A DNA stretch of 64,000 nucleotides from Paragordius varius (taxonomy: Eukaryota; Animalia; Nematomorpha): contig OZ176052.1 in the NCBI GenBank assembly GCA_964247055.1, positions 1,302,001 to 1,366,000 of the forward strand, given 5' to 3'. Positions 1 through 50,770 of this stretch are shown one piece after another. Below the pieces are notes generated by a model. The model searched no databases, was not told the origin of the DNA, and was given only the letters and a program-made list of their open reading frames with translations. The number at the start of each line of letters is the position of its first letter. Position 1 is the first letter of the stretch. The position numbers and the translations under genes are program-made.

Positions 1-3000
1 AACATTAATCCAATCTAAACACCTAAAATATTAACTTACTTGTCCAAGAATCTAAAAATTATATTATAAAAATACTTTTAATTAGGAATATCGAACATTA
101 ATCCAATCACCCAATAAACACCTAAAATATTAACTTACTTCTCCAAGAATCTAAAAATTACATTATAAAAATACTTTTAATAAAGAATATCGAACACTAA
201 TCCAATCATCCACCATTTAACATCTAAAATATTAACTTACCTGACCGAGAATCTATTAATTATATTATAAAATACTTTTAATTAGGAATATCGAACATTA
301 ATCCAATCACCCACCAAACACCTAAAATATTAACTTACTTGTCCAAGAATCTAAAAATTAGATTATAAAATACTTTTAATTAGGAATATCGAACATTAAT
401 CCAATCAACCACCAAACACCTAAAATATTAACTTACTTGTCCAAGAATCTAAAAATAACATTATAAAATACTTTTAATTAGGAATATCGAACATTTATCC
501 AATCACCCACACAACACCTAAAATATTAACTTACTAGTCCAAGAATCTAAAAATAAATTATAAAAATACTTTTAATTAGGAATATCGAACATTACTCCAA
601 TCACCAACCAAACACCTAAAATATTAACTTACTTGTCCAAGAATCTAAAAATTACATTATAAAAATACTTTTAATTAGGAATATCGAACATTAGTCCAAT
701 CACCTACCAAACACCTTAAATATTAACTTACTTGTCCAAGAATCTAAATATTCCATTATAAAAATACTTTTAATTAGGAATATCGAACATTAATCCAATC
801 ACCCACTAAACACCTAAAATATTAACTTACTTGTCCAAGAATCTAAAAATTACATTATAAAAATACTTTTAATTAGGAATATCGAACATTAATCCAATCA
901 CCCACCAAACACCTAAAATATTAACTAACTTGTCCAAGAATCTAAAAATTACATGATAAAAATACTTTTAATTAGGAATATCGAACATTAATCCAATCAC
1001 CCACCAAACACCTAAAATATTAACTTACTTGTCCAAGAATCAAAAATTACATTATAAAAATACTCTTAATTAGGAATATCGAACATTAATCCAATCAACC
1101 ACCAAACACCTAAAATATTAACTTACCTGACCGAGAATCTATTAATTATATTATAAAATACTTTTAATTAGGAATATCGAACATTAATATATCACCCACA
1201 ACACATCTAAAATATTAACTTACCTGTCCAAGAATCTAAAAATTATATTATAAAAATACTTTTAATAAGGAATATCGAACATTAATCCAATCACCCACCA
1301 AACACCTAAAATATTAATTTACTTGTCCAAGAATCTAAATATTCCATTATAAAAATACTTTTAATTAGGAATATCGAACATTAATCCAATCACCCACCAA
1401 ACACCTAAAATATTAACTTACCTGTCCAAGAATCTAAAAATTACATGATAAAAATACTTTTAATTAGGAATATCGAACATTAATCCAATCACCCACCAAA
1501 CACCTAAAATATTAACTTACTTGTCCAAGAATCTAAAAATTACATTATAAAAATACTTTTAATTAGGAATATCGAACATTAATCCAATCACCCACCAAAC
1601 ACCTAAAATATTAACTAACTTGTCCAAGAATCTAAAAATTACATGATAAAAATACTTTTAATTAGGAATATCGAACATTAATCCAATCACCCACCAAACA
1701 CCTAAAATATTAACTTACTTGTCCAAGAATCAAAAATTACATTATAAAAATACTCTTAATTAGGAATATCGAACATTAATCCAATCAACCACCAAACACC
1801 TAAAATATTAACTTACCTGACCGAGAATCTATTAATTATATTATAAAATACTTTTAATTAGGAATATCGAACATTAATATATCACCCACAACACATCTAA
1901 AATATTAACTTACCTGTCCAAGAATCTAAAAATTATATTATAAAAATACTTTTAATAAGGAATATCGAACACTAATCCAATCATCCACCATTTAACATCT
2001 AAAATATTAACTTACCTGACCGAGAATCTATTAATTATATTATAAAATACTTTTAATTAGGAATATCGAACATTAATCCAATCACCCACAACGCACCTAA
2101 AAAATTAACTTACTTGTCCAAATCTAAAAATTACATTATAAAAATACTTTTAATTAGGAATATCGAACATTAATCCAATCACCCGCCAAACACCTAAAAT
2201 ATTAGCTTACTTGTCCAAGAATCTAAAAATTACATTATAAAAATACTTTTAATTAGCAATATCGAACATTAATCCAATCACCCACCAAACACCTAAAATA
2301 TTAATTTACTTGTCCAAGAATCTAAATATTCCATTATAAAAATACTTTTAATTAGGAATATCGAACATTAATCCAATCACCCACCAAACACCTAAAATAT
2401 TAACTTACCTGTCCAAGAATCTAAAAATTACATGATAAAAATACTTTTAATTAGGAATATCGAACATTAATCCAATCACCCACCAAACACCTAAAATATT
2501 AACTTACTTGTCCAAGAATCTAAAAATTACATGATAAAAATACTTTTAATTAGGAATATCGAACAGTAATCCAATCACCTACCAAACACCTTAAATATTA
2601 ACTTACTTGTCCAAGAATCTAAAAATTATATTATAAAAATACTTTTAATTAGAATATCGAACACTAATCCAATCATCCACCTTTAAACATCTAAAATATT
2701 AACTTACCTGACCGAGAATCTATTAATTATATTATAAAATACTTTTAATTAGGAATATCGAACATTAATCCAATCACCCACAACGCACCTAAAAAATTAA
2801 CTTACTTGTCCAAATCTAAAAATTACATTATAAAAATACTTTTAATTAGGAATATCGAACATTAATCCAATCACCCGCCAAACACCTAAAATATTAGCTT
2901 ACTTGTCCAAGAATCTAAAAATTACATTATAAAAATACTTTTAATTAGGAATATCGAACATTTATCCAATCACCCAACAAACACCTAAAATATTAAGTTA

Positions 3001-6000
3001 CTTGTCCAAGAATCTATAAATTATTATAAAATACTTTTAATTAGGAATATCAAACATTAATCCAATCACCCAATAAACACCCAAAATATTAACTTACTTG
3101 TCCAAGAATCTAAAAATTACATTATAAAAATACTTTTAATTAGGAATATCGAACATTAATATATCACCCACAACACATCTAAAATATTAACTTACCTGTC
3201 CAAGAATCTAAAAATTACATTATTAAAATACTTTTGATTAGGAATATCGAACATTAATCCAATCTAAACACCTAAAATATTAACTTACTTGTCCAAGAAT
3301 CTAAAAATTATATTATAAAAATACTTTTAATTAGGAATATCGAACATTAATCCAATCACCCAATAAACACCTAAAATATTAACTTACTTCTCCAAGAATC
3401 TAAAAATTACATTATAAAAATACTTTTAATAAGGAATATCGAACACTAATCCAATCATCTACCATTTAACATCTAAAATATTAACTTACCTGACCGAGAA
3501 TCTATTAATTATATTATAAAATACTTTTAATTAGGAATATCGAACATTAATCCAATCACCCACCAAACACCTAAAATATTAACTTACTTGTCCAAGAATC
3601 TAAAAATTAGATTATAAAATACTTTTAATTAGGAATATCGAACATTAATCCAATCAACCACCAAACACCTAAAATATTAACTTACTTGTCCAAGAATCTA
3701 AAAATCACATTATAAAATACTTTTAATTAGGAATATCGAACATTTATCCAATCACCCACCAAACACCTAAAATATTAACTTACTAGTCCAAGAATCTAAA
3801 AATAAATTATAAAAATACTTTTAATTAGGAATATCGAACATTACTCCAATCACCAACCAAACACCTAAAATATTAACTTACTTGTCCAAGAATCTAAAAA
3901 TTACATTATAAAAATACTTTTAATTAGGAATATCGAACATTAATCCAATCACCCACCAAACACCTAAAATATTAACTTACTTGTCCAAGAATCTAAAAAT
4001 TACATTATAAAAATACTTTTAATTAAGAATATCGAACATTTATCCAATCACCCACCAAACACCTAAAATATTAACTTACTTGTCCAAGAATCTAAAAATT
4101 AGATTATAAAATACTTTTAATTAGGAATATCGAACATTTATCCAATCACCCACCAAACACCTAAAATATTAACTTACTAGTCCAAGAATCTAAAAAATTA
4201 CATTATTAAATACTTTTAATTAGGAATATCAAACATTAATCCAATCACCCACCAAACACCTAAAATATTAACTTACTTGTCCAAGAATCTAAAAATTACA
4301 TTATAAAAATACTTTTAATTAGGAATATCGAACATTTATCCAATCACCCAATCACCTAAAATATTAACTTACTTGTCAAAGAATCTAAAAATTACATTAT
4401 AAAAATACTTTTAATTAGGAATATCGAACATAAATATATCACCCACAACACATCTATATTAACTTACCTGTCCAAGAATCTTATTACATTATTAAAATAC
4501 TTTTAATTAGGAATATCGAACATTAATCCAATCACCCAATAAACACCTAAAATATTAACTTACTTGTCCAAGAATCTAAAAATTATATTATAAAAATACT
4601 TTTAATAAGGAATATCATACACTAATCCAATCATCCACCGTTTAACATCTAAAATATTAACTTACCTGACCAAGAATCTATTAATTATATTATAAAATAC
4701 TTTTAATTAGGAATATCGAACATTAATCCAATCACCCACAACGCACCTAAAATATTAACTTACTTGTCCAAGAATCTAAAAATTACATTATAAAAATACT
4801 TTTAATTAGGAATATCGAACATTAATCCAATCACCCACCAAACACCTAAAATATTAATTTACTTGTCCAAGAATCTAAATATTCCATTATAAAAATACTT
4901 TTAATTAGGAATATCGAACATTAATCCAATCACCCACCAAACACCTAAAATATTAACTTATTGTCCAAGAATCTAAAAATTACATGATAAAAATACTTTT
5001 AATTAGGAATATCGAACATTAATCCAATCACCCACCAAACACCTAAAATATTAACTTACTTGTCCAAGAATCTAAAAATTACATGATAAAAATACTTTTA
5101 ATTAGGAATATCGAACAGTAATCCAATCACCTACCAAACACCTTAAATATTAACTTACTTGTCCAAGAATCTAAAAATTATATTATAAAAATACTTTTAA
5201 TTAGAATATCGAACACTAATCCAATCATCCACCTTTAAACATCTAAAATATTAACTTACCTGACCGAGAATCTATTAATTATATTATAAAATACTTTTAA
5301 TTAGGAATATCGAACATTAATCCAATCACCCACAACGCACCTAAAAAATTAACTTACTTGTCCAAATCTAAAAATTACATTATAAAAATACTTTTAATTA
5401 GGAATATCGAACATTAATCCAATCACCCGCCAAACACCTAAAATATTAGCTTACTTGTCCAAGAATCTAAAAATTACATTATAAAAATACTTTTAATTAG
5501 GAATATCGAACATTAATCCAATCACCCACCAAACACCTAAAATATTAATTTACTTGTCCAAGAATCTAAATATTCCCATATAAAAATACTTTTAATTAGG
5601 AATATCGAACATTAATCCAATCACCCACCAAACACCTAAAATATTAACTTACTTGTCCAAGAATCTAAAAATTACATGATAAAAATACTTTTAATTAGGA
5701 ATATCGAACATTAATCCAATCACCCACCAAACACCTAAAATATTAACTTACTTGTCCAAGAATCTAAAAATTACATGATAAAAATACTTTTAATTAGGAA
5801 TATCGAACAGTAATCCAATCACCTACCAAACACCTTAAATATTAACTTACTTGTCCAAGAATCTAAAAATTATATTATAAAAATACTTTTAATTAGAATA
5901 TCGAACACTAATCCAATCATCCACCTTTTAACATCTAAAATATTAACTTACCTGACCGAGAATCTATTAATTATATTATAAAATACTTTTAATTAGGAAT

Positions 6001-9000
6001 ATCGAACATTAATCCAATCACCCACAACGCACCTAAAATATTAACTTACTTGTCCAAGAATCTAAAAATTACATTATAAAAATACTCTTAATTAGGAATA
6101 TCGAACATTAATCCAATCACCCACCAAACAGCTAAATATTAACTTACTTGTTCAAAAATCTAAAAATTACATTATAAAAATACTTTTATTTAGGAATATC
6201 GAACATTAATATATCACCCACAACACATCTAAAATATTAACTTTCCTGTCCAAGAATCTAAAAATTATATTATAAAAATACTTTTAATAAGGAATATCGA
6301 ACACTAATCCAATCATCCACCATTTAACATCTAAAATATTAACTTACCTGACCGAGAATCTATTAATTATATTATAAAATACTTTTAATTAGGAATATCG
6401 AACATTAATCCAATCACCCACAACGCACCTAAAAAATTAACTTACTTGTCCAAATCTAAAAATTACATTATAAAAATACTTTTAATTAGGAATATCGAAC
6501 ATTAATCCAATCACCCGCCAAACACCTAAAATATTAGCTTACTTGTCCAAGAATCTAAAAATTACATTATAAAAATACTTTTAATTAGGAATATCGAACA
6601 TTAATCCAATCACCCACCAAACACCTAAAATATTAATTTACTTGTCCAAGAATCTAAATAATCCCATATAAAAATACTTTTAATTAGGAATATCGAACAT
6701 TAATCCAATCACCCACCAAACACCTAAAATATTAACTTACTTGTCCAAGAATCTAAAAATTACATGATAAAAATACTTTTAATTAGGAATATCGAACATT
6801 AATCCAATCACCCACCAAACACCTAAAATATTAACTTACTTGTCCAAGAATCTAAAAATTACATGATAAAAATACTTTTAATTAGGAATATCGAACAGTA
6901 ATCCAATCACCTACCAAACACCTTAAATATTAACTTACTTGTCCAAGAATCTAAAAATTATATTATAAAAATACTTTTAATTAGAATATCGAACACTAAT
7001 CCAATCATCCACCTTTTAACATCTAAAATATTAACTTACCTGACCGAGAATCTATTAATTATATTATAAAATACTTTTAATTAGGAATATCGAACATTAA
7101 TCCAATCACCCACAACGCACCTAAAATATTAACTTACTTGTCCAAGAATCTAAAAATTACATTATAAAAATACTCTTAATTAGGAATATCGAACATTAAT
7201 CCAATCACCCACCAAACAGCTAAATATTAACTTACTTGTCCAAAAATCTAAAAATTACATTATAAAAATACTTTTATTTAGGAATATCGAACATTAATAT
7301 ATCACCCACAACACATCTAAAATATTAACTTACCTGTCCAAGAATCTAAAAATTATATTATAAAAATACTTTTAATGAGGAATATCGAACACTAATCCAA
7401 TCATCCACCATTTAACATCTAAAATATTAACTTACCTGACCGAGAATCTATTAATTATATTATAAAATACTTTTAATTAGGAATATCGAACATTAATCCA
7501 ATCACCCACAACGCACCTAAAATATTAACTTACTTGTCCAAGAATCTAAAAATTACATTATAAAAATACTTTTAATTAGGAATATCGAACATTAATATAT
7601 CACCCACAACACATCTAAAATATTAACTTACCTGTCCAAGAATCTAAAAATTACATTATTAAAATACTTTTAATTAGGAATATCGAACATTAATCCAATC
7701 TAAACACCTAAAATATTAACTTACTTGTCCAAGAATCTAAAAATAATATTATAAAAATACTTTTAATTAGGAATATCGAACATTAATCCAATCACCCACC
7801 AAACACCTAAAATATTAACTTACTTGTCCAAGAATCTAAAAATTAGATTATAAAATACTTTTAATTAGGAATATCGAACATTAATCCAATCAACCACCAA
7901 ACACCTAAAATATTAACTTACTTGTCCAAGAATCTAAAAATCACATTATAAAATACTTTTAATTAGGAATATCGAACATTTATCCAATCACCCACCAAAC
8001 ACCTAAAATATTAACTTACTAGTCCAAGAATCTAAAAATAAATTATAAAAATACTTTTAATTAGGAATATCGAACATTACTCCAATCACCAACCAAACAC
8101 CTAAAATATTAACTTACTTGTCCAAGAATCTAAAAATTACATTATAAAAATACTTTTAATTAGGAATTTCGAACATTAGTCCAATCACCTACCAAACACC
8201 TTAAATATTAACTTACTTGTCCAAGAATCTAAATATTCCATTATAAAAATACTTTTAATTAGGAATATCGAACATTAATCCAATCACCCACTAAACACCT
8301 AAAATATTAACTTACTTGTCCAAGAATCTAAAAATTACATGATAAAAATACTTTTAATTAGGAATATCGAACATTAATCCAATCACCCACCAAACACCTA
8401 AAATATTAACTTACTTGTCCAAGAATCTAAAAATTGCATTATAAAAATACTTTTAATCAGGAATATCGAACATTAATCCAATCACCCACCAAACACCTAA
8501 AATATTAACTTACTTGTCCATGAATCTAAAAATTATGTTATAAAATACTTTTAATTAGGAATATCGAACATTAATCCAATCACCCACCAAACACCTAAAA
8601 TATTAACTTACTTGTCCAAGAATCTATAAATTATATTATAAAAATACTTTTAATTAGGAATATCGAACATTAATCCAATCACCCACCAAACACCTAAAAT
8701 ATTAACTTTCCTGTCCAAGAATCTAAAAATAACATTATAAAAATTTAATTAGGAATAGCGAACATTAATCCAATCACCCACCAAATACCTAAAATATTAA
8801 CTTACTTGTCCAAGAATCTAAAAAATTACATTATAAAATAATTTTTATAAGGAATATCGAACATTATTCCAATCACCCACCAAACACCTAAAATATTAAC
8901 TTACATGTCCAAGAATCTATAAATTATATTATAAAAATACTTTTAATTATTGATATCGAACATTAATCCAATCACCCACCAAACACCTAAAATATTAACT

Positions 9001-12000
9001 TACTTGTCCAAGAATCTATAAATTATATTATAAAAATACTTTTAATTAGGAATATCGAACATTAATCCAATCACTCATCGAACACCTAAAATATTAACTA
9101 ACTTCTCCAAGAATCTAAAAACTTACATTATTAAATACTTTTTATTAGGAATATCGAACATTAATCCAATCACCCACCAAATACCTAAAATATTAACTTA
9201 CTTGTCCAAGAATCTATATAAAAATACTTTTAATTAGGAATATCGAACATTAATCCAATCACCCACCAAACACCTAAAATATTAACTTTCCTGTCCAAGA
9301 ATCTAAAAATAACATTATAAAAATACTTTAATTAGGAATAGCGAACATTAATCCAATCACCCACCAAATACCTAAAATATTAACTTACTTGTCCAAGAAT
9401 CTATAAATTATATTATAAAAATACTTTTAATTAGGAATATCGAACATTAATCCAATCACTCATCGAACACCTAAAATATTAACTTACTTCTCCAAGAATC
9501 TAAAAACTTACATTATTAAATACTTTTAATTAGGAATATCGAACATTAATCCAATCCACCAAACACCTAAAATATTAACTTTACTGTCCGAGAATCTATA
9601 AATTATATTATAAAAATACTTTTAATTAGGAATATCGAACATCAATCCAATCACTCATCGAACACCTAAAATATTAACTTACTTCTCCAAGAATCTAAAA
9701 ACTTACATTATTAAATACTTTTAATTAGGAATATCGAACATTGATCCAATCACCCACCAAACACCTAAAATATTAACTTACTTGTCCAAGAATCTATAAA
9801 TTATATTATAAAAATACTTTTAATTAGGAATATCGAACATTAATCCAATCACTCATCGAACACCTAAAATATTAACTTACTTCTCCAAGAATCTAAAAAC
9901 TTACATTATTAAATACTTTTTATTAGGAATATCGAACATTAATCCAATCACCCACCAAATACCTAAAATATTAACTTACTTGTCCAAGAATATATAAATT
10001 ATATTATAAAAATACTTTTAATTAGGAATATCGAACATTAATCCAATCACTCATCGAACACCTAAAATATTAACTTACTTCTCCAAGAATCTAAAAACTT
10101 ACATTAATAAATACTTTTAATTAGGAATATCGAACATTGATCCAATCACCCACCAAACACCTAAAATATTAACTTACTTGTCCAAGAATCTATAAATTAT
10201 ATTATAAAAATACTTTTAATTAGGAATATCGAACATTAATCCAATCACTCATCGAACACCTAAAATATTAACTTACTTCTCCAAGAATCTAAAAACTTAC
10301 ATTATTAAATACTTTTAATTAGGAATATTGAACATTAATCCAATCCACCAAACACCTAAAATATTAACTTTCCTGTCCAAGAATCTAAAAAATTACATTA
10401 TAAAATAATTTTTATTAGGAATATCGAACATTAATCCAATCACCCACCAAACACCTAACATATTAACTTACTTGTCCAAGAATCTATAAATTATTTTATA
10501 AAAATACTTTTAATTAGGAATATCGAACATTAATCCAATCAACCACCAAACACCTAAAATATTAACTTACTTGTCCAAGAATCTATAAATTTTAACATAA
10601 AATACTTTTAATTAGGAATATCGAACATTAATCCAATCAACCACCAAACACCTAAAATATTAACTTACTTGTCCAAGAATCTATAAATTATTTTATAAAA
10701 ATACTTTTAATTAGCAATATCGAACATTAATCCAATCACCCACCAAACACCTAAAATATTAACTTACTTGTCCAAGAATCTATAAATTATATTATAAAAA
10801 TACTTTTAATTAGGAATATCGAACATTAATCCAATCACTCATCGAACACCTAAAATATTAACTTTCCTCTCCAAGAATCTAAAAAATTACATTATAAAAT
10901 AATTTTTATTAGGAATCTCGAACATTAATCCAATCACCCACCAAACACCTAACATATTAACTTACTTGTCCAAGAATCTATAAATTATTTTATAAAAATA
11001 CTTTTAATTAGCAATATCCAACATTAATCCAATTACCCACCAAACACCTAAAATATTGACTTACTTGTCCAAGAATCTAAAAACTTACATTATTAAATAC
11101 TTTTAATTAGGAATATCGAACATTAATCCAATCACCCACCAAACACCTAAAATATTAACTTTCCTGTCCAAGAATCTAAAAAATTACATTATAAAATAAT
11201 TTTTATTAGGAATATCGAACATTAATCCAATCACCCACCAAACACCTAACATATTAACTTACTTGTCCAAGAATCTATAAATTATTTTATAAAAATACTT
11301 TTAATTAGCAATATCCAACATTAATCCAATTACCCACCAAACACCTAAAATATTGACTTACTTGTCCAAGAATCTAAAAATTACATTATAAAAATACTTT
11401 TAATTAGGAATATCGAACATTAATCCAATCACCCACCAAACACCTAACATATTAACTTACTTGTCCAAGAATCTATAAATTATTTTATAAAAATACTTTT
11501 AATTAGGAATATCGAACATTAATCCAATTACCCACCAAACACCTAAAATATTAACTTACTTGTCCAAGAATCTAAAAATTACATTATAAAAATACTTTTA
11601 ATTAGCAATATCGAACATTAATCCAATTACCCACCAAACACCTAAAATATTAACTTACTTGTCCAAGAATCTATAAATTATAACATAAAATACTTTTAAT
11701 TAGGAATATCGAACATTAATCCAATCACCCATTAAATACCTAAAATATTAACTTACTTGTCCAAGAATATAAAAATTACATTATAAAAATACTTTTAATT
11801 TGGAATATCGAACATTAATCCAATCACCCACCAAACACCTAAAATATTATCTTACTTGTCCAAGAATCTATAAATTATATTATAAAATACTTTTAATTAG
11901 GAATATCGAACATTAATCCAATCACCCACCAAACACCTAAAATATTAACTTACTTGTCCAAGAATCTAAAAATTACATTATAAAAATACTTTTAATTAGG

Positions 12001-28405: not shown

Positions 28406-28411
28406 TTATGA

Positions 28412-32001: not shown

Positions 32002-32229
32002 TATATATTTAACATCTTATACAAACAATTATTTTAGATATATCGATATATTTTACTGTTAAAAAATATTTTTTTCGGGATTAAATATATTGCCAAAAAA
32101 TAAAACCATTATTTATATATTTTTATTAGAAAAAAAAACATCTTATAAACATCGTTTAATTGGGAAATGTAAAAATCTTGACAATTTAACGAATTTATAA
32201 ATAAGATTAAATTTTATTAAATGTTTTTT

Positions 32230-33380: not shown

Positions 33381-34979
33381 TTTAAATACCATCAAAATAT
33401 TGTAATAATGCATCAATACAAATAATTTATCGCATCGTATATTATTATAATACAAAAGTAATAAATTGGATCAAGAATAATAATTATTTTTTATTGTTTC
33501 GGTTTAATTTCCGTAGTTAACATGTTGATTTTGACCGTTATTTCGCTGTATATGAGAAGATCATTGTGGAGTTTAAGACTTCCTACTCTTTTTGCTGTAT
33601 TTGGGATTCCTCACGTTTGCCAGATTAATGTTACAACATGCCAATAAATATATTAACTTCTTTTAATTTTAATTTTTCTAACCATTGAATCTACATAACC
33701 GTTTGTAATCTATTAGAGACATAATAAAATATGACATAGTTTTAATATTATGGGATATATTGTAGGTTTTATTTGGTGATATTCTGATTTTATAACCTCC
33801 AATAGAATAAATTTATATTAATCGTATCGTATACAATGGGCTAGTTTTTATTAAAATGAAGTAGAAACAGGGTTTTTATTAACAAAAACAAATTAAAAAC
33901 TAAATTTAACTTTAGTTTTAAATGAAACAATTATATGTAAATTATCTTATATGTTAACTTGAGTTTGCAAAAGTTTCATAGTTTCTTCCAGGGCTTTGAT
34001 TTCTTGAGGCAAACTTACAATGTTTGAGTTGAGTTTTGCATTATCTTTGGGGGCTATTTCAAACTGTTTTCCACCCTAATCCAATTGAGCAATTAATTCT
34101 ATTAAATTAAAATGGAATATTTTTACATATAAATTGACATAAGAAATATAAATAGATATATGTCATATTTATTCAGTTTTAAGACTTTTTGATTAATATA
34201 ATATTTGACTACGCTAAATTTGTAATTAGATAAATTTTATGCCTTTAAATACTTAAGGATCAAAATTTTTTCAATATTTTGCTTTAACAAATTAATTTAA
34301 AAAACTTACATAATTTTACCTTATATTTTGATACTTTTTTTCGACTCCTTGGTCAATGTTAATTTGTTGATTTACTGTTTGCTAAGTTTTCACGCGATCT
34401 AAAAAATTTTAATTAGATATAAAAAGACATAATTATAATAATACTGTAAACATCCCTAGTATTGACTATAATGTAAATATATATTTCATTAATACCTAAT
34501 AGGTATTTAGGCAAAAAAAGATATATTTTTTTCATAGATAAAGTATCCATTATAACCAATAATGCTTTCATTATAAAAGTTTCCTGATAATGCGTATCAT
34601 CATGCCTGACTTAAACCTTTACTAATAAAAAATTAATAGCCTATTCGTATATTTTTTAAGCCAAAAAAACAATATTGATAGTGCATTAAATTGTTTACGT
34701 ACATTTCTAATTTTTAGAGGCGTCAAAATTTATAACACTATTCATCTCATTCAGAAGTTCATATTCTGTGTGTCAATATTCTTATCGCGTTTAAATTAAT
34801 TTAAATCAAACAGTAACATCATGATTAAAAAGACAACAACGGTAAAAGCCTAATATTTTCTTTATATAACGATTTATTATTTTTAACCAACCTATATGAT
34901 AACACTGTAAAAATATAATTGAATGTTTGACCAAATTATATCGCTATCCTATTTGTTTAAATAATCGGTTATTTTAAAT

Positions 34980-37900: not shown

Positions 37901-40900
37901 ATATTTGTCTAAAATAATTTATATTTTATTATCTTAATAGGAATATCGAATGTTCCAACCGCCCAGTCAACACCTATAGTTTTATGTTTGTTGAGGAGTC
38001 ATAAAATTAATAATTAAGATCGATCAATATATTCCAATCACTTTTCTAAAACTTTAAAATTATATTATTATATGCTTTTTATTAGGATCCAACATTCCAA
38101 CCGACCAGTCAACACCTTCAATATTAATAATTGTCAAAAAATAAAATCATATGCTTTTTGTTGATAATTTCGATATTCCAATCTGAACCAGTCAACACCT
38201 ATAATAACTTAGGTGAAATTTCAAAAATTATATTATATAATACTTTTAATTAGGAATATTGAACATTATTCCCATTATCAATCAGTCAACACCAAAGACC
38301 TATAATATTACTAAACTTTCAAATAATATAATATATTATACTTTATTTAAGAATATCGAACAATATTTCAATCATCAACCAGTCAACACCTATAATAACT
38401 TAATTCAAATTTTCAAAAAAATACTATAATATAACTTTATTTTGGAATCAACAATCCAATCAACAACCAGTTAAGACATATATTAACATACTTGTCCAAT
38501 CTAAAAATTATATTATTTACTTTTAATTAAGGAATATGGAACATTAATCCAATCATCCACCAGTTAACACCTGAATATTAAGTTCCTTGTCTAAGAATCT
38601 ACAAATTAGATTATCATATACCTTTAATCTAGAATATCGAACAATAATCCAACAATCCACCATTTTCGTCCTAAAATACCTTACTTGTCAAAAATCAAAA
38701 TTATCCTATAATATCAGTCAACACCTAAAATTTAAATCTATTTGTCTAAAAAATTTATATTATTATATCTTAATTAGGAATATCGAATAATATTCCAACA
38801 ATCCAGTCAACACCTATAATTCTATGTTTGTTGAGGAATCATAAAATTAATAATTAAGATCGATCAATATATTCCAATCACTTTTCTAAAACCTCCAAAT
38901 TATATTATTTTACGCATTTATTAGAATCGAACAATATTCTAACTGACCAGTCAACACCTTTAATATTAATTTGTTAGGAATTTCGATATTCCAATTTCAA
39001 CCAGTCAATACCTATAATAACATAGGTAAAATATCAAAAAATATATTATATAATGCTTTTAATTAGGAATATCGAAAACTATTTCAATTATCAACCAGTC
39101 AACACCAAAGACCTCTAACATTTCTAAACTTTCAAATAATATAATATATTATACTTTATTTAAGAATATCGAACAATATAATATCATCAACCAGTCAACA
39201 CCTATAATAACTTAATTCAAATTTTCAAAAATAATACTATAATATAACTTTATTTTGGAATCAACAATCCAATCAACAACCAGTTAAGACATATATTAAC
39301 ATACTTGTTCAATCTAAAAATATATTATTATTTACTTTTAATTAGGGAATATGGAACATTAATCCAATCATCCACCAGTTAACACCTAAATTATTAAGTT
39401 ACTTGTCTAAGAATCTACAAATTAGATTATCATATACCTTTAATCTAGAATATCGAACAATAATCCAACAATCCACCATTTTCGTCCTAAAATACCTTAC
39501 TTGTCAAAAATCTCAAAAATTATACTATGATATCACTCAACATCTAAAATCTTAAATTATTTGTCTAAAAAATTTATATTATAATATCTTAATTAGGAAT
39601 ATCGAAAAACATTCCAACAGTCCAGTCAACACCTATAATTTTATGTTTGTTGAGGAATCATAAAATTAATAATTAAGATCGATCAATATATTCCAATCAC
39701 TTTTCTAAAACTTGAAAATTATATTATTATACGCATTTATTAGAATGGAACAATATTCTAACTGACCAGTCAACACCTTTAATATTAATAAATGTCAAAA
39801 ATTTTAAAAATCATAATATGCTTTTTGTTAAAAATTTCGATATTCCAATCTCAACCAGTCAACACCAAAGACCTCTAACATTTTTAAACTTTCAAATAAT
39901 ATAATATATTATACTTTATTTAAGAATATCGAACAATATAATCATCAACCAGTCAACACCTATAATAACTTAGTTCAAATTTTCAAAAATAATACTATAA
40001 TATAACTTTATTTAGGAATCAACAATCCAATCAACAACCTGTTAAGACATATATTAACATACTTGTGCAATCTAAAAATTATATTATTATTTACTTTTAA
40101 TTAGGGAATATTGAAAATTAATCCAATCATCCACCAGTTAAGACATATATTAACATACTTGTCCAATCTAAAAATTATATTATTATTTACTTTTAATTAG
40201 TGAATATGGAGAATTAATCCAATCATCCACCAATAACACCTAAATATTAAGTTGCTTGTCTAAGAATCTACAAATTAGAATATCATATACTTTTAATCTA
40301 GAATATCGAGCAATAATCCAATAATCCACCATTTACGTCCTAAAATAACTTACTTGTCAAAAATCTCAAAAATTATACTATAATATCAGTCAACACCTAA
40401 AATTTAACCTATTTGTCTAAAAAAATTTATATTTTAATATATTAATTAGGAATATCAAATTATATTCCAACCGACCAGTCAACACCTTAACCTGTTTGTC
40501 GAAGAATTATAAAATTAATAATTAAGTTGGATTAATATAAGAATCACTTGTCTAAAACTTTTAATAGTTATTATATAATACGCTTAATTAATATCGAACA
40601 ATATTCTAACCGACCAGTCAACACCTTTAATATTAAAGTTGTCAAAATTTTCAAAAATTATATGCTTTTTGTTAATCATTTCGATATCCAATCTCAACCA
40701 GTCAACACCTATATAAACTTAGTGAAATTTCAAAAATTATATTATATAATACTTTTAATTGGGAATATCGAACATTTTTCCAATTATCAACCAGTCAACA
40801 CCAAAGACCTCTAACATTTCCAAACTTTCAAATAATATAATATATTATACTTTATTTAGGAATATCGAACAATATAATCATCAACCAGTCAACACCTATA

Positions 40901-43900
40901 ATAATTTAGTTCAAATTTTCAAAAATAATACTATAATATAACTTTAATTAGGAATCAACAATCCAATCAACAACCAATTAAGACATATATTAACATACTT
41001 GTCCAATCTAAAAATTATATTATTATTTACTTTTAATTAGGGAATATGGAACATTCATCCAATCATCCACCAGTTACCTAAATTATTAAGTTGCTTGTCT
41101 AAGATCTACAAATTAGATTATCATATACCTTTAATCTAGAATATCGAGCAATAATCCAATAATCCACCATTTACGTCCTAAAATAACTTACTTGTCATAA
41201 ATCTCAAAAATTATACTATAATATCAGTCAACACCTAAAATATAAACTTATTTGTCAAAAAATTTTATATTTAAATATAATAATTAGGAATATCGAATAA
41301 TATTCCAATAGTCCAGTCAACACCTATAATTCTATGTTTGTTGAGGATTCATAAAATTAATAATTAATAACGATCAATATTTCCAATCACTTTTCTAAAA
41401 CTTCAAAATTATATTATTATACGCATTTTATTAGAATCGGAAAATATTCTAACTGACGAGTCAACACCTTTAATATAAATAAATGTCAAAATTTTAAAAA
41501 TTATAATATGCTTTTTGTTAGGAATTTCGATATTCCAATCTCAACCAGTCAACACCTATAATAACTTAGGTAAAATTTCAAAAAATATATTATATAATAC
41601 TTTTAGGGATATCGAACATTATTCCAATTATCCACCAGTCAACACCAAAGACCTCTAACATTTCTAACCTTTAAATAATATAATATATTATACTTTATTT
41701 AAGAATATCGAACATTATAATCATCAACCAGTCAACACCTATAATAACTTATTTGTCCAAAATTTTAAAAGTAATACTATAACATAACTTTATTTAGGAG
41801 TCAACGATCCAATCAATACCCAGTTAAGACATATATTAACATACTTGTCCAATCTAAAAATTATATTATTATTTACTTTTAATTAGGGATTATTGAACAT
41901 TAATCCAATCATCCACCAGAAAACACCGGAATTATTAAGTTGCTTGTCTAAAAATCTACAAATTAGATTATCATATACCTTTAATCTAGAAAATCGAACA
42001 ATAATCCAACAATCCACCATTTTCGTCCTAAAATACCTTACTTGTCAAAAATCTCAAAAATTATACTATGGTATCACTCAACATCTAAAATCTTAAATTA
42101 TTTGTCTAAAAAATTTATATTATAATACTTTAATTAAGAATATCGAATAATTTTCCAACAGTCCAGTCAACACCTATAATTTAATGTTTGTTGAGGAATC
42201 ATAAAATTAATAATTAAGATCGATCAATATATTCCAATCACTTTTCTAAAACTTGAAAATTATATTATTATACGCATTTATTAGAATGGAACAATATTTT
42301 AACTGACCAGTCAACACCTTTAATATTAATAAATGTCAAAAATTTCAAAAATCATAATATGCTTTTTGTTAGAATTTCGATATTCCAATCTCAACCAGTG
42401 AACACTTATAATAACTTAGGTAAAATTTTAAAAAATATATTATACAATACTTTTAATTAGGAATATCGAACATTATTCCAATTATCAACCAGTCAACACC
42501 AAAGACCTCTAACATTTCAAAACTTTCAAATAATATAATATATTTTACTTTATTTAAGAATATTGACAATATAATCATCAACCAGTCAACACCTATTATA
42601 ACTTAGTTCAAATTTTCAAAAATAATACTATAAAATAACTTTATTTAGGAATCAACAATCCAATCAACAACCAGTTAAGACATATATTACATACTTGTCC
42701 AATCTAAAATTATATTATTATTTACTTTTAATTAGGGAATATGGAACATTCATCCAATCATCCACCAGTTAAGACCTGAATTAATAAGTTACCCATCTAA
42801 GAATCTACAAATTAGATTATCATATACCTTTAATCTAGAATATCGAACAATAATCCAACAATCCACCATTTACGTCCTAAAATAACTTACTTGTCAAAAA
42901 TCTCAAAAATTATACTATAATATCAGTCAACACCTAAAATTTAAACTTATTTGTCTAAACAATTTATATAATATATTAATTAGGGATATCAATATTCCAA
43001 CTGACCAGTCAACACCTATAATATTAACCTGTTTGTCGAAGAATTAAAAATAAGAATTAAGTTGGATTAATATAAGAATCCCTTGTCTAAAACTTTAAAC
43101 ATATTATATAATACTCTTAATTAAGAATATCGAACTATATTCCATTAACCAGTCAACACCTATTATATACTTACTAAAAATTTCAAAAATTATATAATTA
43201 TATGCTTTTTTTAGTATTGAACAATATTTCAACCGACCAGTCAACACCTTAATATTTGTAATTGTCAAAAATTTCAAAAATTATATTATGCTATGCTTTT
43301 TGTTAGGAATATCGCAATTCCAATCTCAACCAGTCAACACCTATAATAACTAAGGTTAAATTATAAAAATTATATTATATAATACTTTAAATTAGGAAAT
43401 AGAACATTATTCCAATTATTAACCAGTCAACACCAATGATCTCTTAAATTTCTAAACTTTCAAAAAATATAATATATTATACTTTATTTAAGAATATTGA
43501 ACAATATAATCATCAACCAGTCAACACCTATAATAACTTAGTTCAAATTTTCAAAAATAATACTATAATATAACTTTTAGGAATCAACAATCCAATCAAC
43601 AACCAGTTAAGACATATATTAACATACTTGTCCAATCTAAAAATTATATTATTATTTACTTTTAATTAGGGAATATGAAACATTAATCCAATCATCCACC
43701 AGTTAACACCTAAATTATTAAGTTGCTTGTCTAAGAATCTACAAATTAGATTATCATATACCTTTAATCTAGAATATCGAGCAATAATCCAATAATCCAC
43801 CATCTAAGTCCTAAAATAACTTACTTGTCAAAAATCTCAAAAATTATATTATAATATCAGTCAAAACCTAAAATTTTAACCTATTTGTTAAAATTAATTT

Positions 43901-46900
43901 ATATTTTAATATATTGATTAGGAATATCGAATAATATTCAAACCGTCCAGTCAACACCTATAATTTTATATTTGTTGAGGAATCATAAAATTAATAATTA
44001 AGATCGATCAATATATTCCAATGACTTTTCTAAAACTTCAAAATTATATTATTTTACGCATCATATTGGAATCGAACAATATTATAACTGACCAGTCAAC
44101 ACCTTTAATATTAATAAATGTCAAGAATTTCAAAAATCATAATATGCTTTTTGTTAGGAATTTCGATATTCCAATTTCAACCAGTCAACACCTATAATAA
44201 CTTAGGTAAAATTTCAAAAAATATATTATATAATATTTTAATTAGGAATATCGAACATTATTCCAATTATCAACCAGTCAACACCAAAGACCTCTAACCT
44301 AAACTTTCAAATAATATAATATATACTTTATTTAAGAATATCAAACAATATAATCATCAACCAGTCAACACCTATTATAACTTAGTTCAAAATTTCAAAA
44401 ATAATACTATAATATAACTTTATTTAGGAATCAACAATCCAATCAACAACCAGTTAAGACACATATAAACATACTTGTCCAATCTAAAAATTATATTATT
44501 ATTTACTTTTAATTAGGGAATATGGAACATTAATCCAATCATCCACCAGTTAACACCTGAATTATTAAGTTGCTTGTCTAAGAATCTACAAATTAGATTA
44601 TTATATACCTTTAATCTAGAATATCGAGCAATAATCCAATAATCTACCATTTACGTCCTAAAATAACTTACTTGTCAAAAATCTCAAAAATTATACTATA
44701 ATATCAGTCAACACCTAAAATTTAAACCTATTTGTCCAAAAAAATTTATATTTTAATATATTAATTAGGCATATCGAATAATATTCCAATCGTCCAGTCA
44801 ACACCGATAATTTTATGTTTGTTGAGGAATCATAAAATTAATAATTAAATCGATCAATATATTCCAATCACTTTTCTAAAACTTCAAAATTAAATTATTA
44901 TACAGGATCGAACAATATTTCAACCGACCAGTCAACACCTTTAATATTAAGAATTGTCAAAAATTTCAAAAATTATAATATGTTTTTTGTTAATAATTTT
45001 GATATTCCAATCTCAACCAGTCAACACCTATAACTTAGGTAAAATTTCAAAATTATATTATATAATATTTTAATTAGGAATATCGAACATTATTCCAATT
45101 ATCAACCAGTCAACACCAAAGACCTCTAACATTTCTAAACTTTCAAATAATATATTATATTATACTTTATTTAAGAATATCGAACAATATTTCAATCAAC
45201 AACCAGTCAACACCAATAATAACTTAGTTCAAAATTTCAAAAATAATACTATAATATAACTTTATTTAGGAATCAACAATCCAATCAACAACCAGTTGAC
45301 ATATATTAACATACTTGTCCAATCTAAAAATTATATTATTATTTACTTTTAATTAGGGAATATGAAACATTAATCCAATCATCCACCAGTTAACACCTAA
45401 ATTATTAAGTTGCTTGTCTAAGAATCTACAAATTAGATTATTATATACCTTTAATCTAGAATATCGAGCAATAATCCAATAATCCACCATTTACGTCCTA
45501 AAATAACTTACTTGTCAAAAATCTCAAAAATTATACTATGATATCAGTCAACACCTAAAATTTAACCTACTAAAACATTTATATTATAATATCTTAATTA
45601 GGAATATCGAATAATATTCCAACAGTCCAGTCAACACCTATAATTTTATGTTTGTTTGAGTAATCATAAAATTAATAATTAAGATCGATCAATGTATTCC
45701 AATCACTTTTCTAAAACTTGAAAATTATATTATTATACGCATTTATTAGAATGGAACAATATTTTAACTGACCAGTCAACACCTTTAATATTAATAAATG
45801 TCAAAAATTTCAAAAATCATAATATGCTTTTTGTTAGAATTTCGATATTCCAATCTCAACCAGTGAACACTTATAATAACTTAGGTAAAATTTTAAAAAA
45901 TATATTATACAATACTTTTAATTAGGAATATCGAACATTATTCCAATTATCAACCAGTCAACACCAAAGACCTCTAACATTTCAAAACTTTCAAATAATA
46001 TAATATATTTTACTTTATTTAAGAATATTAACAATATAATCATCAACCAGTCAACACCCATTATAACTTAGTTCAAATTTTCAAAAATAATACTATAAAA
46101 TAACTTTATTTAGGAATCAACAATCCAATCAACAACCAGTTAAGACATATATTACATACTTGTCCAATCTAAAATTATATTATTATTTACTTTTAATTAG
46201 GGAATATGGAACATTCATCCAATCATCCACCAGTTAAGACCTGAATTAATAAGTTACCCATCTAAGAATCTACAAATTAGATTATCATATACCTTTAATC
46301 TAGAATATCGAACAATAATCCAACAATCCACCATTTACGTCCTAAAATAACTTACTTGTCAAAAATCTCAAAAATTATACTATAATATCAGTCAACACCT
46401 AAAATTTAAACTTATTTGACTAAACAATTTATATAATATATTAATTACGGATATCAAATAATATTCCAACCGACCAGTCAACACCTATAATATTAACCTG
46501 TTTGTCGAAGAATTATAAATAAGAATTAAGTTGGATTAATATAAGAATCACTTGTCTAAAACTTTAAACATATTATATAATACTCTTAATTAAAAATATC
46601 GAACTATATTCCATTAACCAGTCAACACCTATTATATACTTACTAAAAATTTCAAAAATTATATAATTATATGCTTTTTTTAGTATTGAACAATATTTCA
46701 ACCGACCAGTCAACACCTTAATATTTGTAATTGTCAAAAATTTCAAAAATTATATTATGCTATGCTTTTTGTTAGGAATATCGCAATTCCAATCTCAACC
46801 AGTCAACACCTATAATAATTAAGGTTAAATTATAAAAATTATATTATATAATACTTTAAATTAGGAAATAGAACATTATTCCAATTATCAACCAGTCAAC

Positions 46901-49900
46901 ACCAATGATCTCTTAAATTTCTAAACTTTCAAAAAATATAATATATTATACTTTATTTAAGAATATCGAACAATATAATCATCAACCAGTCAACACCTAT
47001 AATAACTTAGTTCAAATTTTCAAAAATAATACTATAATATAACTTTTAGGAATCAACAATCCAATCAACAACCAGTTAAGACATATATTAACATACTTGT
47101 CCAATCTAAAAATTATATTATTATTTACTTTTAATTAGGGAATATGAAACATTAATCCAATCATCCACCAGTTAACACCTAAATTATTAAGTTGCTTGTC
47201 TAAGAATCTACAAATTAGATTATCATATACCTTTAATCTAGAATATCGAGCAATAATCCAATAATCCACCATCTAAGTCCTAAAATAACTTACTTGTCAA
47301 AAATCTCAAAAATTATATTATAATATCAGTCAACACCTAAAATTTTAACCTTTTTGTTAAAATTAATTTATATTTTAATATATTGATTAGGAATATCGAA
47401 TAATATTCAAACCGTCCAGTCAACACCTATAATTTTATATTTGTTGAGGAATCATAAAATTAATAATTAAGATCGATCAATATATTCCAATGACTTTTCT
47501 AAAACTTCAAAATTACATTATTTTACGCATCATATTGGAATCGAACAATATTATAACTGACCAGTCAACACCTTTAATATTAATATATGTCAAGAATTTC
47601 AAAAATCATAATATGCTTTTTGTTAGGAATTTCGATATTCCAATTTCAACCAGTCAACACCTATAATAACTTAGGTAAAATTTCAAAAAATATATTATAT
47701 AATATTTTAATTAGGAATATCGAACATTATTCCAATTATCAACCAGTCAACACCAAAGACCTCTAACCTAAACTTTCAAATAATATAATATATACTTTAT
47801 TTAAGAATATCGAACAATATAATCATCAACCAGTCAACACCTATAATAACTTAGTTCAAAATTTCAAAAATAATACTATAATATAACTTTATTTAGGAAT
47901 CAACAATCCAATCAACAACCAGTTAAGATACATATAAACATACTTGTCCAATCTAAAAATTATATTATTATTTACTTTTAATTATGGAATATGGAACATT
48001 AATCCAATCATCCACCAGTTAACACCTAAATTATTAAGTTGCTTGTCTAAGAATCTACAAATTAGATTATTATATACCTTTAATCTAGAATATCGAGCAA
48101 TAATCCAATAATCCACCATTTACGTCCTAAAATAACTTACTTGTCAAAAATCTCAAAAATTATACTATAATATCAGTCAACACCTAAAATTTAAACCTAT
48201 TTGTCCAAAAAAATTTATATTTTAATATATTAATTAGGCATATCGAATAATATTCCAATCGTCCAGTCAACACCGATAATTTTAAGTTTGTTGAGGAATC
48301 ATAAAATTATTAATTAAATCGATCAATATATTCCAATCACTTTTCTAAAACTTCAAAATTAAATTATTATACAGGATCGAACAATATTTCAACCGACCAG
48401 TCAACACCTTTAATATTAAGAATTGTCAAAAATTTCAAAAATTATAATATGTTTTTTGTTAATAATTTTGATATTCCAATCTCAACCAGTCAACACCTAT
48501 AACTTAGGTAAAATTTCAAAAATTATATTATATAATATTTTAATTAGGAATATCGAACATTATTCCAATTATCAACCAGTCAACACCAAAGACCTCTAAC
48601 ATTTCTAAACTTTCAAATAATATATTATATTATACTTTATTTAAGAATATCGAACAATATTTCAATCAACAACCAGTCAACACCAATAATAACTTAGTTC
48701 AAAATTTCAAAAATAATACTATAATATAACTTTATTTAGGAATCAACAATCCAATCAACAACCAGTTGACATATATTAACATACTTGTCCAATCTAAAAA
48801 TTATATTATTATTTGCTTTTAATTAGGGAATATGGAACATTAATCCAATTATCCACCAGTTAACACCTAAATTATTAAGTTGCTTGTCCAAGAATCTACA
48901 AATTAGATTATCATATAACTTTAATTTAGAATATCGAGCAATATAATCCACCATTTACGTCCTAAATAACTTACTTGTCAAAAATCTCAAAAATTATACT
49001 ATAATATCAGTCAACACCTAAAAACTATTTGTCTAAAAAAAATTATATTTTAATATATTAATTAGGAATATCGAATATAATTCCAACCGTCCAGTCAACA
49101 CCTATAATTTTATTTTTGTTGAGCATAAAATTAATTATTAAGATCGATCAATATATTCCAATCAACTTTAAAATTATATATGCTTTTTATTAGGATCGAA
49201 CAATATTCCAACCGACCCGTCAACACCTTTAAAATGTATAATTGTCAAAAATTTCAAAAATTATATATTAATATGCCTTTTGTTAGGAATATAGATATTC
49301 CAATCTCTACCAGTCAACACCTATAATAACTAACGTTAAATTTCAAAAATTATATTACATAATACTTTTAATTAGGAATATCAAACATTATTCCAATTAT
49401 CAACCAGTCAACATCAAAGACCTCTAACATTTCTAAACTTTCAAATAATATATACAATACTTTATTTGAGAATATCAAACAATATTTCAATCATCAACCA
49501 GTCAACACCTTTAATAACTTAGTTCAAATTTTCAAAAATAATACTATAATATAACTTTATATAGGAATCAACAATCCAATCAACAACCAGTTAAGACATA
49601 TATTAACATACTTGTCCAATCTAAAAATTATATTATTATTAACTTTTAATTAGGGAATATGGAACATTAATACAATCATTCACCAGTTCACCTAATAAGT
49701 TGCTTGTCTAAGAATCTGGAAATTAGATTTTCATATACCTTTAATCTAGGATATCGAGCAATAATCCAATAATCCACCATTTACGTCCTAAAATAACTTA
49801 CTTGTCAAAAATCTCAAAAATTATACTATAATATCAGTCAACACCTAAAATTAAAACCTATTTGTGTTAAATTTTTATTTTAATATATTAATTAGGAATA

Positions 49901-50770
49901 TCGAATAATATTCCAACCGTCCAGTCAACACCTATAATTTTATGTTTGTTGAGGAATCATAAAATTAATAATTAAGTTGGATTAATATAAGAATCACTTG
50001 TCTAAAACTTAAAATGGTTATTATAAAATACTCTTAATTAGGAATATCGAACAATCCATTAATCACTCAACACCTATTATAACTTACTTGTCAAAAATTT
50101 CAAAAATTATAATATTATATGCCTTTTTTTCCAACCGACCAGTCAACACCTTTAAAATATATAATTGTTAAAAATTACAAAAATTATGTTATATTATGCT
50201 TTTCGATATTCCAATCTCTACCAGTCAACACCTATAATAAATTATCAAAATTATAAAAAGTATACCATAATATAACTTTATTTAGGAATTAACAATAATC
50301 CAATCAACAACCAGTTAAACGTAATATATTAACGTACTAGTCCAATCTAAAAATTATATTATAATTTACTTTTAATTACGAATATGGAGTAATAATCCAA
50401 TCATCCACCAGGTAACACCTAAAATATTAGGTTGCTTGCCCAAAAATCTACAATATATTTTATTATACTTTTAATTAGCAGTTTTAAACCTTCTAATAAT
50501 CCGCCAAACACCAAAAATATTAACCTACTTGCCCAAGAATCTAAAAATTAGATTTTAACTTTTTAATTAAGATTAACGAATAATTATCCAATTATTTACC
50601 ATTTACATCTAAAATACCTTACTTGTCATAAATTTTAAAAATTATATTATAATATAATAATTAGGAATATCGAAAAATAATCCAATTGACCAGTAACACC
50701 TAAAATTATTTTTTCAGTGTAAAAATTTTATTATAATGTACATTTAATTTTTCAATATCGAACAATACAA
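34980..50770. repeat. Higher-order-repeat satellite array of the same family as the 99-bp satellite (~17 HOR units)
   Basis: The marker GTTGAGGAATCATAAAATTAATAATTAAG (or its variant) occurs at ~35,657, 36,900, 37,990, 38,830, 39,649, 40,498, 41,340, 42,190, 43,035, 43,974, 44,821, 45,654, 46,504, 47,443, 48,290, 49,118 and 49,948. Spacing is mostly 820-850 bp, with two 939-bp units and longer first units. Each unit has ~10 diverged monomers sharing TTAATTAGGAATATCGAACA...CCAATCA...ACACCT with the 99-mer. Same orientation as array 1. Confidence 0.97.

Follow-up and report, generated by a model that had tools for sequence, protein, structure and literature searches.

The two tandem arrays in a 64,000-nucleotide stretch of the Paragordius varius genome (contig OZ176052.1; hereafter the window) belong to one satellite family and are related far beyond chance. 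Together with the 8.4-kb spacer between them, these arrays, one of 99-bp monomers (array 1, or S99) and one of higher-order repeats (HORs; array 2), make up one arm of an inverted duplication of ~211 kb, whose two arms flank a 52-kb unique core. We favor, with a probability of roughly one half, a history in which the 99-mer and HOR arrays are sister sub-lineages of one local family and in which the 99-mer did not recently escape from the HOR seen today; both sub-lineages most likely predate the inverted duplication. The host has a very AT-rich animal genome. Although the mirror arrangement of the locus is unusual, its satellite dynamics are ordinary.

Two arrays of one satellite family

The original prediction placed two arrays of one family 8.4 kb apart on the same strand. 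Using a 99-mer profile HMM, we found the monomers of array 2 from 34,976 to ~50,780, all on the + strand and none on the - strand, at a distance of 8,417 bp from array 1. Array 2 produced 86 profile matches of at least 20 bits (best 62 bits), whereas 20 dinucleotide shuffles of it produced none (best 7.6 bits), confirming both the positions and a similarity far above that of shuffled sequence.

Array 2 had been described as a ~840-bp HOR array, and its structure agrees. Dominant k-mer offsets were 840–847 bp, and 16 class-A monomers bound 15 HOR units of 725–939 bp, typically 815–856 bp, the outliers being three units of 934–939 bp and one edge unit of 725 bp. Units consist of eight full monomers (A–H) and two partial pieces, with an extra D-like monomer in three of them, and average 0.912 identity to one another. 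Monomers of the same class are 83–95% identical and those of different classes 56–78%. Array 2 is thus an HOR satellite: head to tail on one strand, more diverged between classes than within them, and with a regular multi-monomer period. Within its recent segmental duplication (Table 1), the units starting at 42,736, 43,670 and 44,517 are 99% identical to those starting at 46,201, 47,139 and 47,986.

For array 1, TRF reported a period of 99, 269.6 copies and 91% matches at positions 17–26,558 of the window. The full array extends from -30,136 to 26,558 in window coordinates (~56.7 kb, 542 monomers). It is interrupted by one LINE insertion upstream of the window, and its final monomer is truncated where the spacer begins. 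Diverged relic monomers lie beyond its outer end.

Rare variants in array 1 had been proposed to match HOR states. The variants are indeed present, AAATTAGATTAT in 14 of 542 left-arm and 13 of 639 right-arm S99 monomers and AATCATCCACCATTT in 24 left-arm S99 monomers, but they are only single-site polymorphisms; at the variant site cited in support of that proposal, the base counts were C 181, T 88 and G 14.

The satellite family is non-coding. A coding or exon-plus-micro-intron reading was ruled out by the 2–4 stops per 99-mer in every frame, and no GT-AG intron of 15–60 nt yields an open repeat in the 99-mer. Rfam searches of the window at the gathering score returned no known RNA family, and for secondary structure or dyad symmetry in the 99-mer and class A monomers, the DNA folds no better than shuffles (z -0.16 to +1.0).

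Table 1. Coordinates of the arrays, their edges and the intervening DNA within the window.
Feature	Position	Strand	Evidence or remarks
S99 array, left arm, part within the window	1..26558	+	TRF, profile matches, array extent, long higher-order blocks
8.4-kb non-satellite spacer	26559..34975	.	Colinear and inverted with window coordinates 118,263-110,208
Outer edge of array 2, irregular, with HOR copies that are old and diverged	34976..37591	+	Profile matches, monomer classes
A' edge monomer	35373..35470	+	3-bp deletion state as in 99-mer (CCAA-ACACC); immediately 3' of A-like monomer
HOR core of array 2	37592..50378	+	15 class-A-bounded units, classes A-H and two partial pieces
Recent segmental duplication in array 2	42736..48826	+	Offset 3,469 bp
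Example class A monomer, 101 bp	44517..44617	+	57 bits against 99-mer profile
Inner edge of array 2: A-like 50,379, A' 50,475, B-like 50,570, degenerate 50,664	50379..50780	+	Profile matches
Inner flank of array 2, inner end of inverted duplication	50780..51788	.	Mirrored at 105,014-104,036, 82% identity
Start of ~52-kb unique core	51789..64000	.	Core ends ~104,035; long - strand ORFs 56,089-63,811, none with a Pfam match above the cut-off

A mirror structure around a unique core

Reading outward from the 52-kb unique core, each arm carries an HOR array, then a spacer and finally a 99-mer array. This inverted duplication was recognized from the strand-flipped arrays and from the colinear, inverted spacer and inner flank; both arrays and the junction of array 1 with the spacer were found on both diverged arms. 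The inverted subarrays of one satellite span tens of kilobases, with S99 occupying 56.7 kb on the + strand of the left arm and 62.8 kb on the - strand of the right arm (639 monomers), and the HOR array 15.8 kb (+) and 5 kb (-), respectively.

Identity between the arms is uneven. In the spacer, which contains no ORF of at least 90 aa, the outer half is mostly 91–95% identical (two intervals at 80–85%) and the inner half 67–87%. The outer spacer beside the 99-mer arrays is ~6% diverged, versus 17–30% for the DNA flanking the HOR arrays, which could mean that the 99-mer stratum is younger. The HOR units themselves are 92% alike between arms, compared with 67–87% for the flanking unique DNA. The spacer also carries dispersed-repeat copies at 27,113–27,699 and 29,046–29,619.

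Within each arm, array 1 contains long higher-order blocks. Blocks of nine monomers match at 98–100% within one arm: their best same-arm match has a median identity of 0.98, 36% reach at least 0.99, and the copies lie 10–160 monomers away. About 30,000 exact 300-bp matches occur inside each S99 arm. Exact matches of at least 200 bp number ~60,000 within each arm and zero between arms, and the best between-arm identity of nine-monomer blocks is 0.93–0.94. We found no colinearity or orthologous multi-monomer blocks between the two S99 arrays (0.928 for left-arm blocks versus 0.924–0.928 for a shuffled-order null). Block amplification in S99 is therefore arm-specific.

These blocks also bear on the proposed contrast between a young monomeric array and an old HOR array, which did not hold. 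The 99-mers have a mean identity of 0.912–0.914 (~9% difference; monomer-matrix analysis), so that they and the HOR copies are both 91% alike. Neighboring 99-mers, at 0.91–0.92, are as similar as the whole-array mean, and array 1 is not a simple monomeric array, in which there would be no structure above the monomer and nearest neighbors would be closest.

An assembly artifact, whether a false inverted duplication or mis-expanded repeats, strikes us as an extremely improbable source of the mirror or the within-arm blocks. Satellite arrays are difficult to assemble, and this structure is known from the assembly, not from reads. However, both kinds of array differ in length between the arms, the spacer differs by 5–33%, the LINE insertion occurs in one arm only, and variant frequencies diverge, with the T variant in 12 left-arm versus 264 right-arm S99 monomers.

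The arrays and the intervening spacer were already in place when an inverted duplication produced the mirror structure. Each arm's arrays may subsequently have been remodeled by unequal exchange or by duplication of multi-monomer blocks. Arm-to-arm exchange is the probable reason why the arrays have diverged less between arms than has the unique DNA flanking the HOR arrays.

Relationship of the 99-mer to the HOR classes and the C2 array

One HOR monomer had been predicted to be closest to the 99-mer among the HOR classes, and this proved to be class A (101 bp, one monomer per HOR unit and the sequence quoted in that prediction). Class A monomers scored 38–59 bits against the 99-mer profile, compared with 0–29 bits for all remaining classes, and are 81–82% identical to the 99-mer, compared with 66–74%. 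The original prediction further held that such a monomer escaped from the HOR and then amplified, so that all 99-mers should lie inside one HOR class; our results spoke against this step. In the monomer tree, built without an outgroup, the 99-mers group in a clade of their own (support 99/94), separate from crown class A (99/95), which excludes them. Nine of the 15 fixed differences between the 99-mer and the class A consensus are private to class A, and four A-diagnostic motifs that we tested had no occurrence in ~1,180 99-mers, so class A as it now exists in the HOR is not the ancestor of the 99-mer. The 99-mer lacks the diagnostic states of the A lineage, including those already found in the oldest edge copies of A. 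That both arrays occur on each of the diverged arms of the inverted duplication is a further point against a recent escape. What survives of the predicted origin is a single family, class A as the closest HOR class and 99-mer-like monomers at the edges; nesting and the young/old contrast do not.

Overall, the 99-mer is more similar to a related array on contig C2 (85–87% identity; 91% across the 3' two-thirds) than to class A, and the C2 consensus is the one nearest to all other monomer classes. The 99-mer has mosaic similarity: over its first 33 bases it most resembles class A (86% versus 80% for C2), and over its last 66 bases C2 (91% versus 80% for A). In the ML tree, C2 falls just outside a group of 99-mers, A, H and A' (97/87), a position compatible with the 99-mer having arisen locally from the diversity of array 2. 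AU tests, on ~100 columns, cannot reject grouping the 99-mer with A, C2, H or the edge type A' (all p 0.48–0.62).

The edges of array 2 carry the monomers most relevant to an early origin. The 99-mer-like edge monomer predicted near 50,490–50,570 corresponds to A' at 50,475, and further such monomers lie at 50,379 and, unforeseen in that prediction, at 35,275 and 35,373. At 35,094–35,560, the order is G-like, H-like, A-like (35,275), A' (35,373) and B-like. A' stands in the HOR context H-A-A'-B at both edges of the array and shares a 3-bp deletion with the 99-mer; the deletion state is present in A-like as well as A' edge monomers.

Sharing of this deletion by A' in its H-A-A'-B context is as predicted if the 99-mer arose from an early HOR. 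An A- or A'-type monomer, tandemly duplicated like the A-A' pairs at the edges, would have been amplified, prior to the last arm-to-arm event, to give the 99-mer array, with C2 a secondary transfer. We regard this history, the form in which the predicted escape can best be defended, as unlikely. It fits the rank of class A among HOR classes, the occurrence of A' in this context on both arms, the ML grouping of 99-mers with A, H and A' to the exclusion of C2, the merely ~6% divergence of the outer spacer and the relic monomers outside the left array. It is opposed by a class A clade without 99-mers, by the missing A-lineage states, by the greater overall closeness of C2 under indifferent AU tests, and by a 99-mer array that is neither simply monomeric nor uniformly young.

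The likeness of the 99-mer to A and A' might instead be reticulate, stemming from gene conversion or unequal exchange between neighboring arrays, which would leave mosaic monomers and no tree-like descent. We consider this unlikely. The split similarity of the first 33 and last 66 bases, the deletion in both A-like and A' edge monomers, the conflicting characters and AU tests that favor no placement, and the between-arm likeness of the HOR units relative to flanking unique DNA are all consistent with such exchange. On the other hand, the 99-mer arrays never show A-diagnostic states, no exact match of at least 200 bp connects the arms, and the segments lack the length needed to test formally for recombination.

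If the arrays are, as we favor, sister sub-lineages, a canonical long-form monomer of ~98–101 bp would also have built the C2 array, and the 99-mer would most likely be its local homogenized continuation. The HOR would be a divergent multi-monomer unit that absorbed canonical-type monomers (A, and A' in the oldest copies). For the direction of descent between 99-mer and HOR, we tentatively infer the usual monomer-to-HOR path or a split from a common ancestor. Were the predicted escape true, the locus would display an HOR-to-monomer direction of satellite evolution in place; that direction is not established here, and the locus leaves current models of satellite evolution unchanged.

Known parallels, genomic distribution and possible function

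In primate alpha-satellite, HOR arrays lie beside monomeric layers, described by an age-gradient or 'layered expansion' model (PMC5109768). The P. varius locus resembles this system in holding one family as an HOR and a more uniform array, with diverged relic monomers at the edges and new arrays formed, by our reading, via amplification and unequal exchange. New alpha-satellite arrays expand at the core, whereas here the HOR arrays lie nearer the unique, ORF-bearing core and the more uniform arrays farther out; also unlike alpha-satellite, the monomer is 99 bp and the family occurs at only two chromosomal loci.

The major and minor satDNAs of Tribolium form macro-dyad symmetries, stated to be documented only there (PMC13081366; PMC12581902). 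In both systems, two related satellites share one ~100–110 bp basic unit, one is organized via higher-order repeats, and arrays of tens of kilobases lie in inverted orientation. In Tribolium, however, inverted subarrays abut at conserved inversion sites in multi-megabase (peri)centromeres on all chromosomes, whereas here spacers and the 52-kb core separate the arms at a single locus, and orientation does not switch recurrently within an array. The locus is a possible case outside Tribolium of related satellites in large-scale dyad symmetry.

The satellite library model reportedly dates to Fry and Salser in 1977. It invokes differential amplification of related variants (PMC6429384). As in that model, related variants coexist, one amplified to a large array and others at low copy; the model addresses differences between species, whereas these variants are neighbors within a single genome.

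Compact and fully assembled, the locus lets a homogeneous-looking array, an HOR array of the same family and their relic edge monomers be compared across its two diverged mirror arms. The apparent ~92% between-arm likeness of the HORs, against 67–87% for neighboring unique DNA, would make arm-to-arm satellite exchange measurable.

We judged genome-wide distribution by pattern counts. The 99-mer and HOR-type motifs are confined to the locus on C3, genome-wide totals equaling the counts inside the 304 kb examined. Among the matches listed, the canonical 24-mer occurs on C3 and C2 only and not on C1, with at most 24 forward matches unplaced. The family therefore does not form an array on every chromosome, as a centromeric satellite would.

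Large inverted repeats with arm-to-arm gene conversion occur as sex-chromosome palindromes, and inverted-repeat centromeres are found in fission yeast and Candida tropicalis. As in these, mirror arms flank a unique core and parts of the arms are more alike than adjacent sequence; unlike them, arm identity here is patchy (67–95%), the arms are mostly satellite, and the structure is known from sequence alone. We consider it very unlikely that the ~211-kb mirror is more than a passive duplication and serves as a functional element of the chromosome. By analogy with fission yeast, such an animal element could, for example, be a putative regional centromere or a domain bounded by heterochromatin, in which array-restricted exchange would keep the arms' satellites alike while the unique DNA between them diverges. 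The 16 long core ORFs had no match in an Atlas search and no Pfam match above the cut-off except one RT fragment; one of the core ORFs showed a weak Sec10-like Pfam match below the cut-off.

Two related arrays in a mirrored locus

TRF and a profile built from array-1 monomers placed the 99-mer array (array 1) and the HOR array (array 2) on the + strand, with array 2 lying 8,417 bp downstream, in agreement with the original prediction of two related arrays in the same orientation, 8.4 kb apart. Profile matches of at least 20 bits numbered 86 in array 2 and 0 in 20 dinucleotide shuffles, so the similarity between the arrays exceeds that in the shuffled controls. Offsets of 840-847 bp dominate array 2, which comprises 15 units, typically 815-856 bp long (range 725-939 bp), with eight full monomers (classes A-H) and two partial pieces; three of the 15 have an extra D-like monomer, and the array contains a recent 3,469-bp duplication. 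Because monomers of the same class are 83-95% identical and those of different classes 56-78%, array 2 is a true HOR, as had been claimed at a period of ~840 bp. The HOR monomer originally quoted as nearest to the 99-mer proved to be class A (101 bp). With the 99-mer profile it reaches 38-59 bits and all other classes 0-29 bits, and its mean identity to 99-mers is 0.81-0.82, compared with 0.66-0.74 for the others.

The analysis covered an assembled 304-kb stretch of the contig (C3; window -80,000 to 224,000) and 40 kb of C2, another contig with an array of a related monomer, in an animal genome of 110.5 Mb, 44 contigs and ~25% GC. Coordinates outside the window are contig positions minus 1,302,000. 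The C3 locus, ~211 kb long, reads 99-mer array, spacer, HOR array, 52-kb unique core, HOR array, spacer, 99-mer array. The junction between array 1 and the spacer is kept in both arms. When only substitutions are counted, the spacers of the two arms mostly agree at 91-95% in their outer half and at 67-87% in their inner half. The arms are of unequal length, their variant frequencies differ and a LINE is present in only one of them, which makes an assembly artefact an unlikely source of the mirror structure.

Coordinates of satellite arrays, flanks and other repeats (window coordinates unless a contig is named)
Feature	Position	Strand	Details
Two diverged relic monomers	-31,041 to -30,895		~770 bp beyond the left 99-mer array, on its outer side
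Left 99-mer array	starts -30,136, 30 kb upstream of the window		542 monomers, 56.7 kb, one 3.4-kb LINE insertion
Array 1, 99-bp period	17-26,558	+	TRF: 269.6 copies, 91% matches
Spacer	26,559-34,947		colinear, inverted, with 118,263-110,208
Two dispersed repeats, ~600 bp	29,046-29,619 and 27,113-27,699		in spacer
Array 2, related monomers	34,976 to ~50,780	+ only	found with profile from 99 array-1 monomers
Inner flank	50,780-51,788		matches 105,014-104,036, BLAST identity 82%
Short tandem repeat, 21/42 bp	53,565-53,678		core; unit starts GTCCTTGAACACTTCAAGTTG; unrelated to 99-mer family
RVT_1 reverse-transcriptase fragment	95,503-95,982	-	unique core; E 5e-18
Right HOR array	105,080-110,108	inverted	~5 kb
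Right 99-mer array	118,264-181,039	inverted	639 monomers, 62.8 kb
Related array, ~98-bp monomer	C2:7,113,156 to beyond 7,136,700		monomer 85-87% identical to 99-mer; same superfamily

Among published arrangements, the closest is that of Tribolium, where related major and minor satellites show macro-dyad symmetry; according to the authors, such symmetries are documented only in that genus (PMC13081366). The C3 locus differs in having just one mirror, which includes spacers and a 52-kb core. It also departs from the standard model for alpha-satellite, in which new arrays expand at the core and older ones are pushed outward (PMC5109768), since here the order around the unique core is reversed.

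The non-LTR retrotransposon of ~3.4 kb (window ~-16,072 to -12,683; C3 ~1,285,928-1,289,317) lies only in the left 99-mer array, and its uninterrupted 903-aa ORF, with Exo_endo_phos endonuclease and RVT_1 reverse transcriptase (E 1e-38) domains, makes the insertion look young. The 99-mer array has a GC skew of ~-0.57 along its whole length, each monomer bearing a C-rich patch; owing to the opposite orientation of the arms, the G-rich strand points outward from the core (5' to 3') on either side.

Divergence and block amplification

Monomers of the left 99-mer array have a mean identity of 0.912 and those of the right 0.914, while comparisons across the arms give 0.906; neighbouring 99-mers (0.91-0.92) are not more alike than the array mean. 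For HOR units the averages are 0.912 inside the left arm and 0.921 from arm to arm. The repeating units of arrays 1 and 2 are thus equally diverged, and array 1 is not simply monomeric, contradicting the proposed pairing of a young monomeric array with an old HOR array: blocks of nine 99-mers have a best same-arm copy of median identity 0.98 (at least 0.99 for 36% of blocks), at offsets of 10-160 monomers. Exact matches of at least 200 bp number ~60,000 per arm and 0 between arms. Across arms, the best identity of left-arm blocks (0.928) equals that of a null with shuffled monomer order, and no colinearity was found. Each arm therefore amplifies long blocks independently, using monomer variants common to both.

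Descent of the 99-mer

In a maximum-likelihood tree of 128 monomers and 101 columns, the 99-mers formed their own clade (support 99/94) with both arms mixed, and were not nested in class A, whose crown clade (99/95) contained no 99-mers. A polytomous group (97/87) united the 99-mers with the A lineage, class H and A', a distinct edge monomer type, and C2 was the next branch out; AU tests rejected none of the pairings of the 99-mer with A, C2, H or A' (p 0.48-0.62). The 99-mer and the class A consensus are separated by 15 fixed differences, nine of them private to A and six to the 99-mer. Two further results speak against the claimed escape from an HOR class: the A-diagnostic motifs ATATGGAACA, CCACCAGTTAAC, TCTACAAATT and ACCTTTAAT have no match in ~1,180 99-mers, and by identity the 99-mer is nearer to C2 than to class A (pairwise 0.85-0.86 for C2; consensus 87% vs 82%), the C2 figure rising to 91% over the 3' two-thirds. 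The C2 consensus is also nearest to all other HOR classes. Rare array-1 variants with HOR states, cited for the escape, are real but amount to single-site polymorphisms (C 181, T 88, G 14 at the cited site).

Arrays 1 and 2 most likely represent sister lineages within a single local family, and both predate the last arm-to-arm event. A monomer-first history or a split from a common ancestor is the most likely course, with a probability of about one half. Escape of the 99-mer from an early HOR is less likely, though favoured by the oldest HOR copies, which read G/H-A-A'-B at both edges of array 2, by A' monomers at 35,373, 50,475 and 105,313 (right arm) that share the 3-bp deletion state of the 99-mer, and by the relic monomers just beyond the outer end of the left array. 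The A' monomer at 50,475 is the edge monomer correctly picked out at the start as 99-mer-like. A reticulate history of both arrays is about as likely as such an escape. HOR units are ~92% alike between arms vs 67-87% for unique DNA on both sides, from which we infer array-restricted exchange between arms that would keep the HOR units alike.

Genomic spread and other elements

A 32-nt 99-mer motif occurs 463 times forward and 600 times reverse in the whole genome; the 304-kb C3 stretch holds 462 and 600, and the remaining forward copy is on C2. An HOR-type motif gives the same counts genome-wide and in that stretch (32 forward, 9 reverse). The 99-mer and HOR subfamilies are confined to the C3 locus. 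A canonical 24-mer has 315 forward matches, of which 191 fall on C3 and at least 100 on C2, and 111 reverse matches, every one of them on C3. By these genome-wide motif counts and placements the family is not a pan-chromosomal satellite. The C2 array sits on another chromosome-scale contig, and in parts its full monomers alternate with 45-bp partial units (143-bp spacing). The satellite family is non-coding; no Rfam family matched, and folding the monomer revealed nothing notable.

The dispersed spacer repeats are probably non-autonomous transposons marking array edges. Within the 304 kb, one has copies where the left array ends on its outer side (-30,366 to -30,140) and at four further sites; the second is present again at 51,548-52,121 and in the right arm. 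The relic monomers are set off from the left array by non-satellite sequence, part of which is a copy of a dispersed repeat. In the unique core, a minus-strand run of ORFs (window 56,089-63,811; 384, 347, 120, 184, 370 and 172 aa) is probably a multi-exon gene; none matched Pfam above threshold, with one weak Sec10-like match below the cut-off. The RVT_1 fragment adjoins a 400-bp local inverted repeat at 95,461-96,500.
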